Shown piece after piece: positions 19,281 to 55,257 of a stretch of DNA of 64,000 nucleotides. The first letter of the stretch is position 1. Every line of letters begins with the position of its first letter. Origin of the DNA: Calcarisporiella thermophila CBS 279.70 (taxonomy: Eukaryota; Fungi; Calcarisporiellomycota). The position numbers were made by a program, and so were the translations under genes. The notes beneath the pieces are model-generated. The model was not told where the DNA came from. It did no database searches and was given only the letters and a program-made list of their open reading frames with translations. The stretch is taken from assembly GCF_041956535.1 (NCBI RefSeq), contig NW_027192197.1:693829-757828 (forward strand), written 5' to 3'.

Positions 19281-21490
19281 TCATATCTCAATGACCTCTC
19301 CAAAACAACTTGAGCATTTGGGTACCTCCTCCAAAAAATACAGTGCACTGATAGGATTTCTCAGCAGTGAATCATCGGGGGTTTTCTTCTTCATTTGGGA
19401 AACGTGGGACGGGGTAGGAGGCAAAGTCAGGGTGGTGGCTGCGGAAGAGGAGTGTCCCGTCGAGGCTGAAGAGGCGCGGCGAAAATGTTGCTGGCTATAT
19501 TGCGGCGATGTGGCGGACGTCGAGGGCTGCATGCTAAACATCCTATGATGGCTTGATTGGCTATACGGGATCGCAGGCATGGAATAGCGGGACTTTCCAG
19601 TGTAGCTACTATAGCGTGCTATTGAAAGGGTTAAATTAGAGTTTGTAAAGCTTGGTTACTATGATGCGAGAAAAAAATAGATGAAATACATGAGACACCG
19701 GAGATCAAACCGCCTGTTCCGAGTGCCCTCTTTCCAGTCCCATTTAGTTCCACAGCTTCATAGGCACGCATCTCTGACAGCTGTCTCGAAAGCTCGCGAT
19801 TCTGCCATTTTAGTGCTCGAATTTCATCCTGCAGCGCCTCAGTGGGAGCCTGTAGTGCGTCAGCATCTTGAGAGAGCTCTACCTGGCTGCTTCTGTCAGA
19901 TTGAGCAGGATTTAGGTTTTTTCCATCAGATCGTGGGTCGGGTATCATCTTCTCACTGTGAACAATCGGAAGCAGGATTCCAGGCGGGTTTGAATGTGCC
20001 TCCTTAGGCATAATCGGCAGCAGAATTCCCTGTTCTTCGGCGGAAACGACATCGCCAGTCTTATTTGATTCTAATTGCTCGGTTAGAATACTGACCTCTC
20101 CCTCCAGTCGCTTAATGGCCTCTATTCCTTCTGTTCTTACTTCCTCCATCTTTAGCTTTAATTCTTCCATCTCTCTCAGCACCTCGTCCCTTTCGCTTTC
20201 CATAACATCTGCTCTATTTTCGGCTTCTGTCACGCGCATTGAGAGTTTAGCTACGCTCACCTCCGCGATATCCAGGTTCGATTGTAGTGAATCCCGCTCG
20301 GATAAAAGCTCAGCTACAAGATTCTCCTTCTTTGCCAGCGCGGCCATCGTCTCTTGGATTCGGACACTCAGCGCGACGTTTTCTTCGCGAAGAGCATCCG
20401 TCGCGGTGCGTAGAGAGTGGAGGTGCTCATTTTCGGAGGTTGCTTCGGAGAGCTTGGACTCGCAAATGGAAAGTGTTTGCTGGAGAGAGCTCAGGGCGCT
20501 CTCCTGATTTGCGAGATCTTGTTGTGTTTTGTGTAATTGGTCGCGCAAAGAATTCACCTCCTCCTCCTTACTCTCCACTAGAGTTTTCATACATTGTACA
20601 TTTTCTGCCATTGCTCTATTCTCGGCACGACTCTGGTTGATTGTCTCCTCCTGTTCTTTCACCTGCGCCACCAGCTTGTTCCTTTGATTCTCGAGAGTGT
20701 GCAACGACGCCTCTCTTTCTTGTGACAATTTGAGTTGATCGCGTAAAGAGAGCAGCTCGGCCTCCAGTTTGTTGGAAAGCTCCTCGCCATCTTTTAGCCG
20801 CCTTTCTAATGTTAGCTTCTTAGCTCTAAGTTGTCCAATGGTCGCCTCACGAGCCTTCAAATTTTCTTCTAAGAGTTTCAATCTCGCTTTAATGTCCAGT
20901 GGAGCTTCTTCCTCCTAACACAATAACACATTTCATATTATAAAGCTTGCAATACGTTCAAATAAACGCAAAAACTTACCGTATTTGACTGCACGGATTT
21001 ATCCCTTGCGTCGATTTCTTCTATTGCTAATGCATTTACTGCCTCAGTTTCATGAGGATATTGATTTGCGTGTGAGCTATTTTTTTCATCCTCGTTGAAT
21101 TCTATACTCGATTTAGTTAGATGCATCTAGGACACACTATTATCCATGGGTGTTTCCATTACCAGTTGTGGTCGATGGTGATTTGCCGTTAGTAAATGAG
21201 GGTAGCATTAGGAGTTGAGGAGATTTTTCGAGAGAGCTCCGGGGAGAATTGGGCTTGTCCGCCACCGTTGTTCGGGGATCTACTGTGCTTACACTGGAGA
21301 CCGATGCCAAGCTTGGGGATCGAGAGCGAGGCTCGTCTTTCTTTTTTTGAAACTTCTTGAGCTAGGGGTAAGGGGTTAAACGTGAGAATATCTATAGGAA
21401 TAGCGTAATTTCATTTAAAAGGAAAACCTTTTTACGCGCCGCTAAAACCTTTTCCGCCCTAGCAGCATCACTATTTTGTTGAGGCTCCAT
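19281..21490 (-). CDS. GM130/Bug1-like golgin (long coiled coil)
   Basis: Spliced N-terminus KVLAARKKLKKFQKKK, long coiled coil and C-terminus PKCSSCFGEVIEI*. Confidence 0.7.
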
Positions 21491-48423: not shown

Positions 48424-49531
48424 TCAACTTAGAAGGTCATCAAAGATGCCCTCCAAATATTCATCAAACTCCTCGTCGCGAGTTTTCTCAGCAACCACCG
48501 TAGTCCGTGTCCAGATATTGTCGGCATCCTCTTTCTGTTTCTCCTCCTCTTGGCCTGCAGTTTCTTCTGACTTTCGTTTGTCTTTTATAGAGAATCGATG
48601 CGAACGGGCAATCAGAATCGTTTAGAGTTGCCATAGAATAAAATAATCCTTACCTTCACCTTCTACTTCGTCTTCTTCCTCTTCCCCTTTTCTCCGCCTC
48701 TTTCCTTTCTCCTTTTCTCGTTCACTCAATCCCTCTTCTTCCCTCTTATCCCGGTGCCGTTTCCGTCGTGCCAACTTGGCCTGCCGTTTATAATTGAGTT
48801 TGTTGGAGCAAGCTTCACAAAGTCGCACCTTAACCAGTGCGTTCTTGCGCTCGCCATGCTCTTGATATGCGAAATTCACCTCCCAACTCTTGAGTCCGTT
48901 GATCTCTTCACAAGAAGTTGAAGCACAAACGAACTGGCCTAGTAGATACGTGAGGAGAGAGAGAAGTATGATAAATAACTGTAATATGCATACCTTTGCC
49001 TGATATGACTTCCTTCTGTGTCCGCCATCGCATGGCGATCTATCAATAAAAATGACCAGGTTTTGTCTTATGCATGCGCGATTAAAAAAAGCAGCTACAC
49101 CCACCTTGCCCACTCGGTAGTACTTTAATTCTATGATGGCATACTCTTTAAATAGTTTATTGTAATACTTCTGAGCGACGCGCTGCTCCCAGGTGAGATT
49201 GGCATCTTCCTCGGGATCCCTCAAGAATCTGCTCGAAACAAAAAGTTAAGTCAAAGAATGGAGGCGAGCAAAGTGATATTCAAGTTACTTGTGATTTTCA
49301 ATCAAGACGTCTACATCTGTCTTTCCTTCTGCTAGGCGTGATCTTGATTTTGAGCGAGTGCCATAGAAATTAAGATATTCTGTGACATATTTCTTGTGCC
49401 GCGAATACTTATGAATAAAAGACAACTAGTTAAGGTCGCGAATAAAATAGCGTACAATGTAAGGTACCCACGGCATCAAGTCCTCCTAAATCGTTGCGGA
49501 ATATACGTTTAGTGAATTCATTCTGTTCCAT
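48424..49531 (-). CDS. FRA10AC1: FRA10AC1 spliceosomal C-complex protein
   Basis: WEQRVAQKYYNKLFKEYAI, MRWRT.KEV..GKGQF.C, SWEVNFAY.EHGERKNALVKVRLC..CS.KLNY and F..DLL C-terminus. Confidence 0.93.
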
Positions 49532-49671: not shown

Positions 49672-52600
49672 TTAGACACTTCTCGTCCCCTTTTCTCGCA
49701 CCGCCATATCCTTCAAATCCCAGTCCACCTGCACCATTCCTTCCATGAAGCGCTTCTCTTCCTTTTCCCTTCGCTCCCATTGTCTCTTCTCCGACTCGGG
49801 CGGGGAGGCTATATCCGTCTCTGGTTGTTGGCGAAGTCGCGATTTGAATAGAGCTGGCTCCATTCTCTCGAGCCTGGACTCATACCGCTGCAGTTTTCTT
49901 CGCGTTTCCTCCAGCTCTGCTAGAATTCTTCCGTCTAATGTCAGACCTTCGCCAAGGCCCGCAAATTTCCTGCGACCATCCTCCTCTTTGAATTGCGACA
50001 CGAACGATTCAACGCGGCTCCCACGTTCAAATTGATCTTCGTATCTCTTCATGCGCTCCACTAACTTTCGCCGCTCCACCTGTAATTCAGCGAGCTCAGT
50101 GTCCTTCACCATCATATCACGCTGTAAGCTCTCGACGCGAGTCCGCAAGCGCCTTGCCTCTTCTTGCACCTCTCGGAGCTCTTCTTTAAGCGCCCGTATA
50201 GCCATTTCCCCGTCGCGCGTTAAACCCTGCATCTTTTCTTCCAGCGCTGCCCGGCTCGTCAGAACGCGCTCTCGAGTCACCATGTTTTGGAAGGCATGGG
50301 CCCTCAAATCCGCCACGACTCGCTCCAGTCTGTCGCTCCTGCTTCTCTCGACCTGCATCTGATGCAACGCATCCTGTTTATCGCGCTCAAGCTCGCGAAG
50401 CGTGGCAGTGAGCCGTTCATTTTCGACACTGACATCGCGGAGCTGAATTTGGAGTTCGTTGCGCGTGCCATCCAGGGTAAAGAGCATGTCACGCGCATTT
50501 TTTAGCTCGCTTTGCAAACGAATGTGCTCCTCTTCGGTTTGCTGAAGTTCTTTCTCGGCGCTGGCGAGACTCTTTTTTAAGTCTATATTAAGGGGATAAA
50601 AGAAGTGAAAATATTTTAAAAAATGGAATCGGTCGTAGCGTCTCACTCCCCAACTAACCTCTACACTGTTGCTCAAAAAATTGCTTTTCTTCCTTAACCC
50701 GCCCAATCTCAAGTGCACAGTCATCCAGCGCCCTTTGTAGCTGAGCGATGCGTCGTTCTCGAAGCTGCTCTCCCGACTCTCGCTCCATCTTTCGAGCCGT
50801 CTCCTTCAACCTCCTAATCTCTTCCACTTTATCTTGTTCCCTAAGCTCACATTCTTTATGTCGGTCCATTGAGATCCGCAGCTCGGAGGCAAGTCGATCG
50901 CGCTCCGCCATGACTCGGGTGAGTTCAGTGTCGAGTCGCTCACACTCGCGAATATAGGACGTGACCTGGGCTCGAAGGTGGTTTACTTGGGCGTCAGATT
51001 CGCGCAGGGACGCCTTCAGGCTATCGCGGTCGGCAGTGACTTGTGCAAGAAGCCCGGCAAGCTCTTGTTCCTCTCGTTTATCTGTGTTGCTTTCACTGCC
51101 ATATTGCTTTCGTTCCAACCCGCGGATTCTCTCTTCACGGTATCTAAGCTCTTCATTCAGCTCTTCGCATCTTCTCTCTAGTCTACTTATGGCCTGCCTT
51201 GTCTCTTCTTCCTCTTTTTTGTCTTCCGTTTTGTTCCCGTTGCCATATCGAGTCCGGTCCTTATAGAGCCCCATAAGCTCTTCGTGCATTTGCGAGTACA
51301 GCAACTTAAGATTTTCTCTTTCCACCTCTATCGAGCGCATCTCTTCTTCAATATTATCGATATGAAACTCGAATTGGCGCAGCAGTGAGATCAGTTCACG
51401 GTACTGTTGTGAGGAGCCCAACCCTTCCACCTTCTCGGTCGTCTCCCGTCGGAGCGTATCACGAACAGAGTCCTTGGGCGTTCCCGCAATGTGGGATAGT
51501 TTCTCACCAAGCATACGAAGCTGGTCAGTAATGAGGCGCTGTTGGCTTTCAAGAACTTGAAGCTGGGAATCATGGGACGGCCGGCTGTCATCATGGGACG
51601 AGGTGGGAGACTGCCCTGGACGTGGTGATGTAGTGTTTTGAGGCGAAATTGACTGGGGACGGTCGAGCTCGGAGCGTGCTTCCACGAGTGCCAGGCGCAA
51701 GCGGCTATTTTCCGCTTTTAATTCTGAATAATTATTGCATTCCAACATAGTGTCCGGATTAGCCCTCGTTGTCATTCACATAAGTCGATGGGAATGTACT
51801 TACGTTCAAAGTCCTCGCGTATCTGCTCATTTGTCCGCTCTAGGGATTTTTGAATCATCGCAACATGTTCTTCCAGCTCCTCTGTGGTCATCGTACGTTG
51901 GTTGCTGTTGCCCTCAGTGTCGTCTGTCTCGCCGTCTTTTGCTCTGTCAAGCAAAGCACTTTGGAACCTACGTGTCAACTTCTCTACCTCACACAAGTTC
52001 TTGCCTAGCTTCTTCCTGCTCTCTGCGTTCACTTGCTCGACGAGTCGTGCTCGGTCTGTGCCATAGGTGGAGGCTAGCATCTCTTTTTCACGCTTTAGTC
52101 GTCCAACGTTCTAATCAATTAACAAAAATGCACGGTGAGCAATAGGCGGCCATCACAAGTCTATAATACTCATAAGATTTTGTGGGCTAGACGGATACTT
52201 ACTTCCTCCAAATCCATCACTCTGTCCTGCAAATACTCCACAAGAGTCTCCAACTGTTCAACACGCGTCGATCGGGTCACCGCGGAAGATTTACTATTAA
52301 GATACTCCATGTTCTCGACACACCGCTCTTCGAGCGCAGCGTTCAGTCGAGTGATTTCATTCTCACGATGTTCGACTTTCTTGGACAGTTGCTCAATCTA
52401 AAGACGGGTAAAAGAAAATGGCCATGAACATGGAACACAATCAAAAGAGTAACTAAATTGTAGGTGAGCATTCCAACCTCTTCTTCTAATTCTTCTACTT
52501 TTTTGAGTTCTTCACTCTTCTGTGGTAAGCTATCGGCTTTAACGTCACCTATAAGAAGAAGCAAAAGGTTCGCTTTGGTAAACAGAAGGATAGGATGGGC

Positions 52601-53143
52601 CATTAGATTATATTTACCTTGGCCTTGGGCAAAACCTATCATCTTGAGAGCCTCTATCTGCTCTTCTAATAATCGTCTCTTCTTCCGCTCTTCTATTTCA
52701 ACACGATCCTTCTCATCAGCCGCGTGAATTATGTCGACGTGTAGCTGATTGTTCTCCTGCGTCAAATATAGAATCTCTTTTCTCAAAGGCTCAAGCTATA
52801 ACCAGGAAACAGTTAAACGTACATCAATCAATCAAACCAATGGTGAAATCAAACTAATTAATGAAATAAAAAACAAGCGAAGGAAAAAAAAAGCAGGGAA
52901 GTGAGTTCACACCTGACTCTCTGCATGCCATCGTGCGCGATCGGACGCCTTCTTCTCCTCCCGTAGTGTGTCTCGCAGCTCTGCAGCGAGCTCAAGCTCG
53001 TCGAGGAGACGCGAAACTAGGGGAACGCTCTCTATTGTAAGGAGCGAATCCCAGCCACATTGGAGGGCGCTGAGGCGATGGAGGGTATGGTTGTAATCTT
53101 GCTCGCGGTCCTGGTTGGTTTCTTGGGATGGTTTAGGCGCCAT
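49672..53143 (-). CDS. CEP135: CEP135/Bld10-like centriolar coiled-coil protein (about 7 exons, roughly 1000 aa)
   Basis: LTIESVPLVSRLLDEL, LEPLRKEILYLTQENNQLHVDII, KKVEHRENEITRL, VEQLETLVEYLQ..VMDLEE and ERSRSDRLERVVADLR..AF occur in the same order as the conserved CEP135 blocks; exons splice in frame. Confidence 0.78.
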
Positions 53144-54299: not shown

Positions 54300-55257
54300 A
54301 TGGAGACAACAACAACCACACAAGCTAGCACATTGCAGTTCTCATTCCCACTGACTGTAGACCCATTGCCCCCCATGCCGTTCCAGAAAGAGGCAAGGCA
54401 CCGGCGACGTAGCGCCCCCGTGCGCTCCTCATTAGTCACCCATTCCATGGCAACCCCACCCTTTTTCTCCCCCAACACCCATGAGCCATTCAGCTTCTCC
54501 ACATTAACAGGAGAAGAGCCATCCCTACTACCACTTCCTAGCAAGGCCTTGTCTGGTATGCCATTCCGCTCTAGCTTCTTCGACCCCCTATCACGGTATT
54601 AATTAGGTCATCATGCTCTCTGATTTTTTAGGCCCAAGACCCATTGCTCCGGCCCCAAGCCCCTCTTTGACCTCCGCTTCGATGCTGACCCCAACCCCGC
54701 TATACCCTTCAGTACCACCCCCACCTCCTATGTCGGCGAAGCGCGCAGCAGCGCTTACCCGACGTGCCGCACAAAATCGGGCTGCACAGCGGGCCTTTCG
54801 CCAGCGCAAAATCCAATACATCAAGGATCTCGAGGATAAGGCCACCGAGCTGGAGAAACTACGCGAGTCGTACGAATTGCTCAAGCGGGAGAACGAGCAG
54901 CTCCACGCCGCCATCCAAAAATACGAGCAACAGCAATACTATTCGAACCGAAGCGAGAGACATAGCCTCTCGCCTGCCTCCGAAACAGAGCGCTCCCAAA
55001 GCTCCTCGTCCCCCTCATCAATAGGCCTCCTGCTTGGACTGGATAATCCGCAGGTGCTGAAGGATTTGGGATGGGGGAACGATGGGGCCTTGATCTCGAG
55101 CGAGCCGCTACAAAAGCACGCGCTGCACCAGCCCTCCATACTGCAGCAGCTGAATTTGCCCGACCCCGAGTCGGCCAATTCTGACAGCTCAGTGCAGGCG
55201 GAGCTGCGGTTTGGAGACTTGAGCATGGAGGATGAAAAAAAGCTCTGGAGAATATAA
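54300..55257 (+). CDS. AP-1/Yap-type bZIP transcription factor (one intron, about 54556-54631)
   Basis: RRAAQNRAAQRAFRQRKIQYIKDLE basic region plus leucine zipper. Confidence 0.88.

Follow-up and report, generated by a model that had tools for sequence, protein, structure and literature searches.

An intact CEP135/Bld10-like gene and a set of centriole-assembly genes in the non-flagellated fungus Calcarisporiella thermophila

Did fungi lose the centriole when they lost the flagellum? In the standard account, both disappeared together at the origin of the spindle pole body (PMC1599754). Among fungi, Ito and colleagues detected genes for centriole biogenesis in chytrids only, and none in Coemansia (PMC6559791, PMC6070874). 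In a 2026 survey, which covered 184 proteomes of fungi, CEP135, CPAP, STIL, POC1A and C2CD3 are listed as specific to flagellated fungi, in a class that tolerates one residual protein per group and does not include PLK4 (PMC13358043); the available supplement of that survey does not contain Calcarisporiella. Here, we analysed a stretch of 64,000 nucleotides of the Calcarisporiella thermophila genome (the window), in which a gene resembling CEP135/Bld10 raises the question of what such a gene does in this fungus. The species belongs to Calcarisporiellomycota (NCBI taxonomy), its lineage is that of a septate saprobe sister to Mucoromycotina (PMC6899921), and this non-flagellated fungus lies within or next to Mucoromycota. 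Its genome is from a survey of thermophiles, the main text of which does not mention centrioles (PMC11393059).

The gene is encoded on the minus strand, with the ATG at 53143 and the stop codon ending at 49672. A model made from splice signals contains seven exons and six introns and gives 985 codons in frame with no internal stop. All six introns are of the GT-AG type, are 69-117 nt long and have a GC content of 37%, as compared to 52% in the coding sequence. The translation of every exon agrees with the deposited 985-aa protein VTP21DRAFT_10593 (XP_069253216.1), annotated in the database as an 'uncharacterized protein' of C. thermophila. Thus, the undisrupted splicing reported by the first-pass annotation was borne out, and the five peptide blocks which it described as colinear were all located on the minus strand in the order given. 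The gene is present in one copy in the genome, on contig C7. A heptad pattern runs along the entire protein and no Pfam domain exceeds the cut-off, in keeping with CEP135/Bld10 proteins, which are almost entirely coiled coil, have no further domain and measure roughly 1000-1400 aa. The features are as follows (all on the minus strand).

49672..53143, minus strand: whole gene VTP21DRAFT_10593, probable CEP135/Bld10 ortholog, single copy
52913..53143, minus strand: exon 1, aa 1-77; start codon, unstructured leader and first conserved helix (block 1)
53041-52994, minus strand: block 1, residues 35-50
52618..52795, minus strand: exon 2, aa 78-136; conserved N-terminal coiled coil (block 2), best PDB match 7BJI
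52795-52739, minus strand: block 2, residues 78-96
52478..52548, minus strand: exon 3, aa 137-160; from the splice model and the database protein
52203..52397, minus strand: exon 4, aa 161-225; coiled coil with blocks 3 and 4, generic coiled-coil matches only
52382-52332, minus strand: block 3, residues 166-182
52253-52227, minus strand: block 4, residues 209-217
51804..52110, minus strand: exon 5, aa 226-327; coiled coil
50659..51723, minus strand: exon 6, aa 328-683; Pro/Ser-rich break at about aa 337-390, then long coiled coil
49672..50582, minus strand: exon 7, aa 683-985 and stop; C-terminal coiled coil with block 5
50349-50290, minus strand: block 5, residues 761-780

Directly downstream on the same strand lies a FRA10AC1 homolog (48622-49400), a divergently oriented bZIP gene (54613-55257, plus strand) lies upstream, and a mannosyltransferase gene is also among the neighbours. 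No MCB, SCB or E2F consensus was found in the 500 bp upstream of the gene. Elsewhere in the window there is a second long coiled-coil exon (19631-20881, minus strand), which matched no Pfam family at E 0.001.

The identification as CEP135/Bld10, proposed in the first-pass annotation, is supported by PDB matches specific to the N-terminus and by a language-model search. When residues 20-135 were compared with 177,635 PDB sequences, only three matches were obtained. The top one was CEP135 (7BJI, E 8.7e-4, residues 75-130), the second was chain 9QZC_q (E 0.043, residues 32-107) and the third, at E 6.6, was a designed protein. The alignment to 9QZC_q extends over 76 ungapped columns, across blocks 1 and 2 and the exon 1/2 junction at the first intron. 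The 9QZC structure is the Tetrahymena A-C linker and holds residues ~1-360 of Bld10/CEP135 (PMC12506977); its 380-aa 'centrosomal protein' chain 9QZC_q is taken to be the N-terminal piece of that protein. The two leading matches are thus CEP135 chains and not merely generic coiled coils. Exon 2 alone also had 7BJI (CEP135) as its best PDB match (E 8.8e-4), and exon 1 alone had no PDB match. The likeness of blocks 1 and 2 holds, therefore, against real CEP135 sequences (7BJI, 9QZC_q); that of blocks 3-5 to human CEP135, as proposed in the first pass, is putative. In the ESM Atlas, the whole protein had CEP135 clusters at all of the first three ranks (score 0.96, 145-153 shared features), and residues 15-260 had a CEP135 cluster at rank 2.

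Searches of other kinds were less informative. A single-sequence monomer model of the N-terminus was helical (pLDDT 75), and a fold search with it gave no match at E<=0.001. Large protein searches with exon 1, residues 20-330 and residues 22-132 found, at either E<=0.001 or E<=10, no homolog other than the query's own entry; one other database match in the homolog searches was rejected as a repeat artefact. A metagenome scan with exon 6 found nothing.

In comparison to vertebrate (7BJI) and Tetrahymena (9QZC) CEP135/Bld10, the C. thermophila protein is alike in being an all-coiled-coil protein of ~1000 aa with a conserved N-terminal helix and in having an LEP...ENN.LH block at the same position. 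However, it is very divergent and somewhat shorter (985 aa), its residues 32-135 are acidic (17 K/R vs 24 D/E), and its genome lacks triplet tubulins, with none of the tested ciliary genes found. We conclude that the gene, weak as the sequence similarity is, very probably represents a CEP135/Bld10 ortholog. The name 'centriole-cartwheel homolog' given to it in the first pass stands as regards CEP135, but 'cartwheel' is too narrow, as in the Tetrahymena structure the conserved N-terminal part of CEP135 sits in the A-link on the microtubule wall (PMC12506977).

The first-pass annotation named SAS-6 and SAS-4 among the genes to look for, and both were found in the genome; SAS-6, SAS-4/CPAP and CEP135, the core centriole module, are thus together in one genome. 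A SAS-6_N match (E 4e-19) lies on contig C19, in an intact gene of 8 exons with about 473 codons in frame, and the product matches solved SAS-6 heads. It retains the Phe of the head-to-head contact, which aligns with the residue that is F in 2Y3V and D in 2Y3W, an oligomerisation-dead mutant structure. SAS-4/CPAP is on contig C32 (TCP domain E 3e-20 in Pfam; CPAP E 2.5e-22 in the PDB). On contig C6 there is a PLK4 of 779 aa with the kinase, PB1 and PB2 domains, for which a protein search matched only itself and a metagenome scan nothing. The DUF3668 domain of CEP120 was detected over the cut-off on contig C8 (locus L036:1765-3252, minus strand), in a gene that appears shorter than animal CEP120. 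A PACT domain protein is encoded on contig C15 and a centrin-like gene on contig C9, tail-to-tail with CFAP20 (296.5-297.8 kb). The sole STIL_N candidate in the genome, at E 3.5e-4, is below the Pfam cut-off; it is a single 232-codon frame (C7:895286-895981, minus strand) about 148 kb from CEP135, the C-terminal end of which is presumably reminiscent of the STAN motif of STIL/Ana2. CEP44, FOP and Sfi1 families had no match in the genome, and a divergent Sfi1 could escape detection. In a screen for TBC domains, TBC1D31 was not located among six weak loci.

Ciliary genes were searched for in the same genome. Two Pfam models found nine tubulin genes (3 alpha, 5 beta and 1 gamma) and no delta, epsilon or zeta tubulin. 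The five beta-tubulin genes are on contigs C1, C2, C5 and C8, and three of them are clearly divergent; a specialised isoform for the pole structure is possible. With two dynein models, a single dynein heavy chain was detected, closest to cytoplasmic dynein-1 (1e-119, vs 1e-44 for dynein-2), and heavy chains of the axonemal and IFT dyneins were not found. IFT57, IFT81, PACRG, B9 and RSP3 had no match in the genome, while IFT20, GAS8 and DNALI1 gave only matches below the cut-off, amounting to coiled-coil noise: the weak IFT20 match was a generic coiled coil and the weak DNALI1 match was exon 6 of the CEP135 gene itself. These searches for absence covered one family per module and were run without a eukaryotic positive-control genome. 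CFAP20 is kept (contig C9), although PACRG, its partner at the inner junction, had no match, and a weak second CFA20-domain match (C4:1335519-1335650, E 0.07) could be a relic of WDR90 or CFAP20DC, or noise. Among the families tested, then, none of the delta or epsilon tubulins, IFT subunits or axonemal dyneins named in the first pass was found. The interest of the locus had been made to depend on a non-flagellated host, the gene being unremarkable in a flagellated one with full ciliary genes; the genome is of the former kind, in that SAS-6, SAS-4 and PLK4 are kept and axonemal dyneins, the tested IFT subunits and delta/epsilon tubulin are lacking.

Several known systems help to interpret this combination. 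Zoosporic fungi (chytrids, Blastocladiomycota, Olpidium) have SAS-6, CPAP, PLK4, CEP135, CEP120, centrin and a pericentrin-like protein in common with C. thermophila (PMC12659703, PMC13358043), but add IFT, axonemal dyneins, mostly epsilon/zeta tubulin, and flagella, whereas C. thermophila has none of the families tested. The reduced kinetosome of sanchytrids (PMC8371127) offers another comparison: in both lineages, axonemal dyneins and the delta and epsilon tubulins are missing, and the nine-singlet centrioles of sanchytrids indicate that a cylinder can be built with genes of this kind. Sanchytrids, however, retain IFT-B in part, as well as a non-motile pseudocilium, and stand near Blastocladiomycota, while Calcarisporiella belongs to a terrestrial non-flagellated clade. 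Coemansia reversa (PMC6070874) is likewise non-flagellated, and there the situation is the reverse: a ring of nine microtubules was seen at the spindle pole with no SAS-6, CPAP or CEP135 ortholog detected, whereas in C. thermophila the genes are present. We found no ultrastructure of C. thermophila in the literature searched. A centriole-like microtubule ring is also a feature of the nucleus-associated organelle of Basidiobolus, a non-flagellated zygomycete.

We consider it likely that the gene is a CEP135 ortholog inherited from flagellated ancestors and that it works in a cilium-free centriole-assembly pathway at the spindle pole. The retained members of this putative pathway would be PLK4, the STIL-like protein, SAS-6, SAS-4/CPAP, CEP135, CEP120, centrin and the PACT protein. 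By analogy to the pathway in protists and animals, a SAS-6 cartwheel would be initiated once in every nuclear cycle by PLK4 together with the STIL-like protein, SAS-4 would build the microtubule wall, and a CEP135 dimer would connect the cartwheel to that wall, with its N-terminus bracing adjacent microtubules. Because delta, epsilon and zeta tubulin are absent, the wall would probably consist of singlets or doublets. The resulting short cylinder may recruit gamma-tubulin via the PACT protein and so serve as the spindle pole. The split of non-flagellated fungi is dated near 660 Ma (PMC7865070), and a frame of 985 codons interrupted by six clean introns could not be expected to survive that long unless selection maintained it. 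The trigger (PLK4, STIL-like), the hub (SAS-6), the link (CEP135), the wall builders (SAS-4, CEP120) and the gamma-tubulin anchor (PACT) have been retained, and the ciliary parts and triplet tubulins lost, for which a short cartwheel-based cylinder is the simplest reading. From gene content only, we infer a vestigial centriole, and with this organelle also the expression, interactions and localisation of CEP135. On balance, we lean towards the view that C. thermophila builds a PLK4/SAS-6-dependent, cilium-free centriole, probably of nine singlets, as its spindle pole, ~600 million years after flagellum loss; centriole loss in fungi would then have been a separate and much later event that took place several times (Dikarya, Mucorales, Zoopagomycota).

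The main rival to this view accepts a true CEP135 ortholog but not a microtubule cylinder: the protein would belong to a cartwheel or ring seed, or to a scaffold licensing duplication of the spindle pole, within a spindle pole body of the fungal type. The absence of delta, epsilon and zeta tubulin and the unmatched CEP44 and FOP would fit such a structure, as would the apparently reduced STIL-like and CEP120-like genes and the strong divergence of every component, and animal SAS-6 is able to dock, by way of pericentrin, on the spindle pole body of yeast (PMC6559791). However, SAS-4/CPAP, CEP120 and the CEP135 N-terminus, all of them wall-building or wall-binding parts, are kept, and sanchytrids build singlet centrioles without delta or epsilon tubulin (PMC8371127). 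We thus regard a wall-less cartwheel or scaffold as unlikely, though well within consideration.

A different objection is that the gene encodes an unrelated long coiled coil which resembles CEP135 by chance. Pfam showed nothing specific in the protein, with generic coiled-coil matches only, and the E-values reached 1e-3 to 4e-2 at best. In the PDB, residues 136-330 match GCN4-type coils and residues 188-330 gave generic coiled-coil matches only; in the ESM Atlas, the runners-up were nearly equal to the leaders (CEP128, Spindly and CCDC171 clusters, 0.95-0.96). Against this, residues 20-135 had PDB matches below E 6 only to two distant CEP135 orthologs, and these lie where expected, at the N-terminus; three CEP135 clusters head the Atlas list, and the length of 985 aa fits those clusters, which are of 1084-1145 aa. 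In addition, the partner genes of CEP135 are encoded in the same genome. A chance resemblance is therefore improbable.

It could also be argued that the centriole genes derive from a flagellated eukaryote contaminating the assembly, or from recent horizontal transfer, as a comparable gene set has otherwise been reported from zoosporic fungi only (PMC13358043, PMC6559791). However, these genes are single copies spread across six large contigs (C6, C7, C8, C9, C19, C32), two of which also bear alpha-tubulin or the sole dynein heavy chain (C6 bears both that dynein and an alpha-tubulin), the CEP135 neighbours are ordinary fungal genes (FRA10AC1, bZIP, mannosyltransferase), and the collections searched hold no close relative. 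A flagellated contaminant would add ciliary genes and duplicate housekeeping genes; we saw neither, and there is one gamma-tubulin, so that a foreign source is very improbable. Finally, the basal-body genes, CFAP20 and centrin would be consistent with an unseen flagellated stage, in which case the CEP135 gene would be unremarkable, but dynein heavy chains are hard to miss, the axonemal and IFT types and all eight other ciliary families sought (IFT57, IFT81, IFT20, RSP3, PACRG, GAS8, DNALI1, B9) were unmatched, and the same search detected divergent, intron-split SAS-6, PLK4 and CEP120, which makes a hidden flagellum extremely unlikely.

In Supplementary Data 2a of an earlier comparison, the SAS-6 group (mcl_6822) has a frequency of 0 in Zoopagomycota, 0.071 in Mucoromycota (1/14 species) and 0 in Dikarya (PMC10406608). 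The sampling given there leaves out Calcarisporiella, hence the SAS-6-bearing member of Mucoromycota is another species, and retention of SAS-6 in Mucoromycota may be wider than C. thermophila. We found no description of a retained centriole module in a non-flagellated terrestrial fungus, in a literature search that was thin on subscription journals and the contents of figures.

The presence, in a land fungus that is non-flagellated, of an intact CEP135 alongside SAS-6, SAS-4 and PLK4 sets the loss of the flagellum apart from that of the centriole, and offers a natural minimal set of centriole genes freed from ciliary duties. Its proteins, coming from a thermophile, would be thermostable centriole proteins usable for structural work. 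C. thermophila is also a living candidate for the intermediate between centriole and spindle pole body that was proposed from electron microscopy of zygomycetes, and with it this transition becomes testable in a culturable species.
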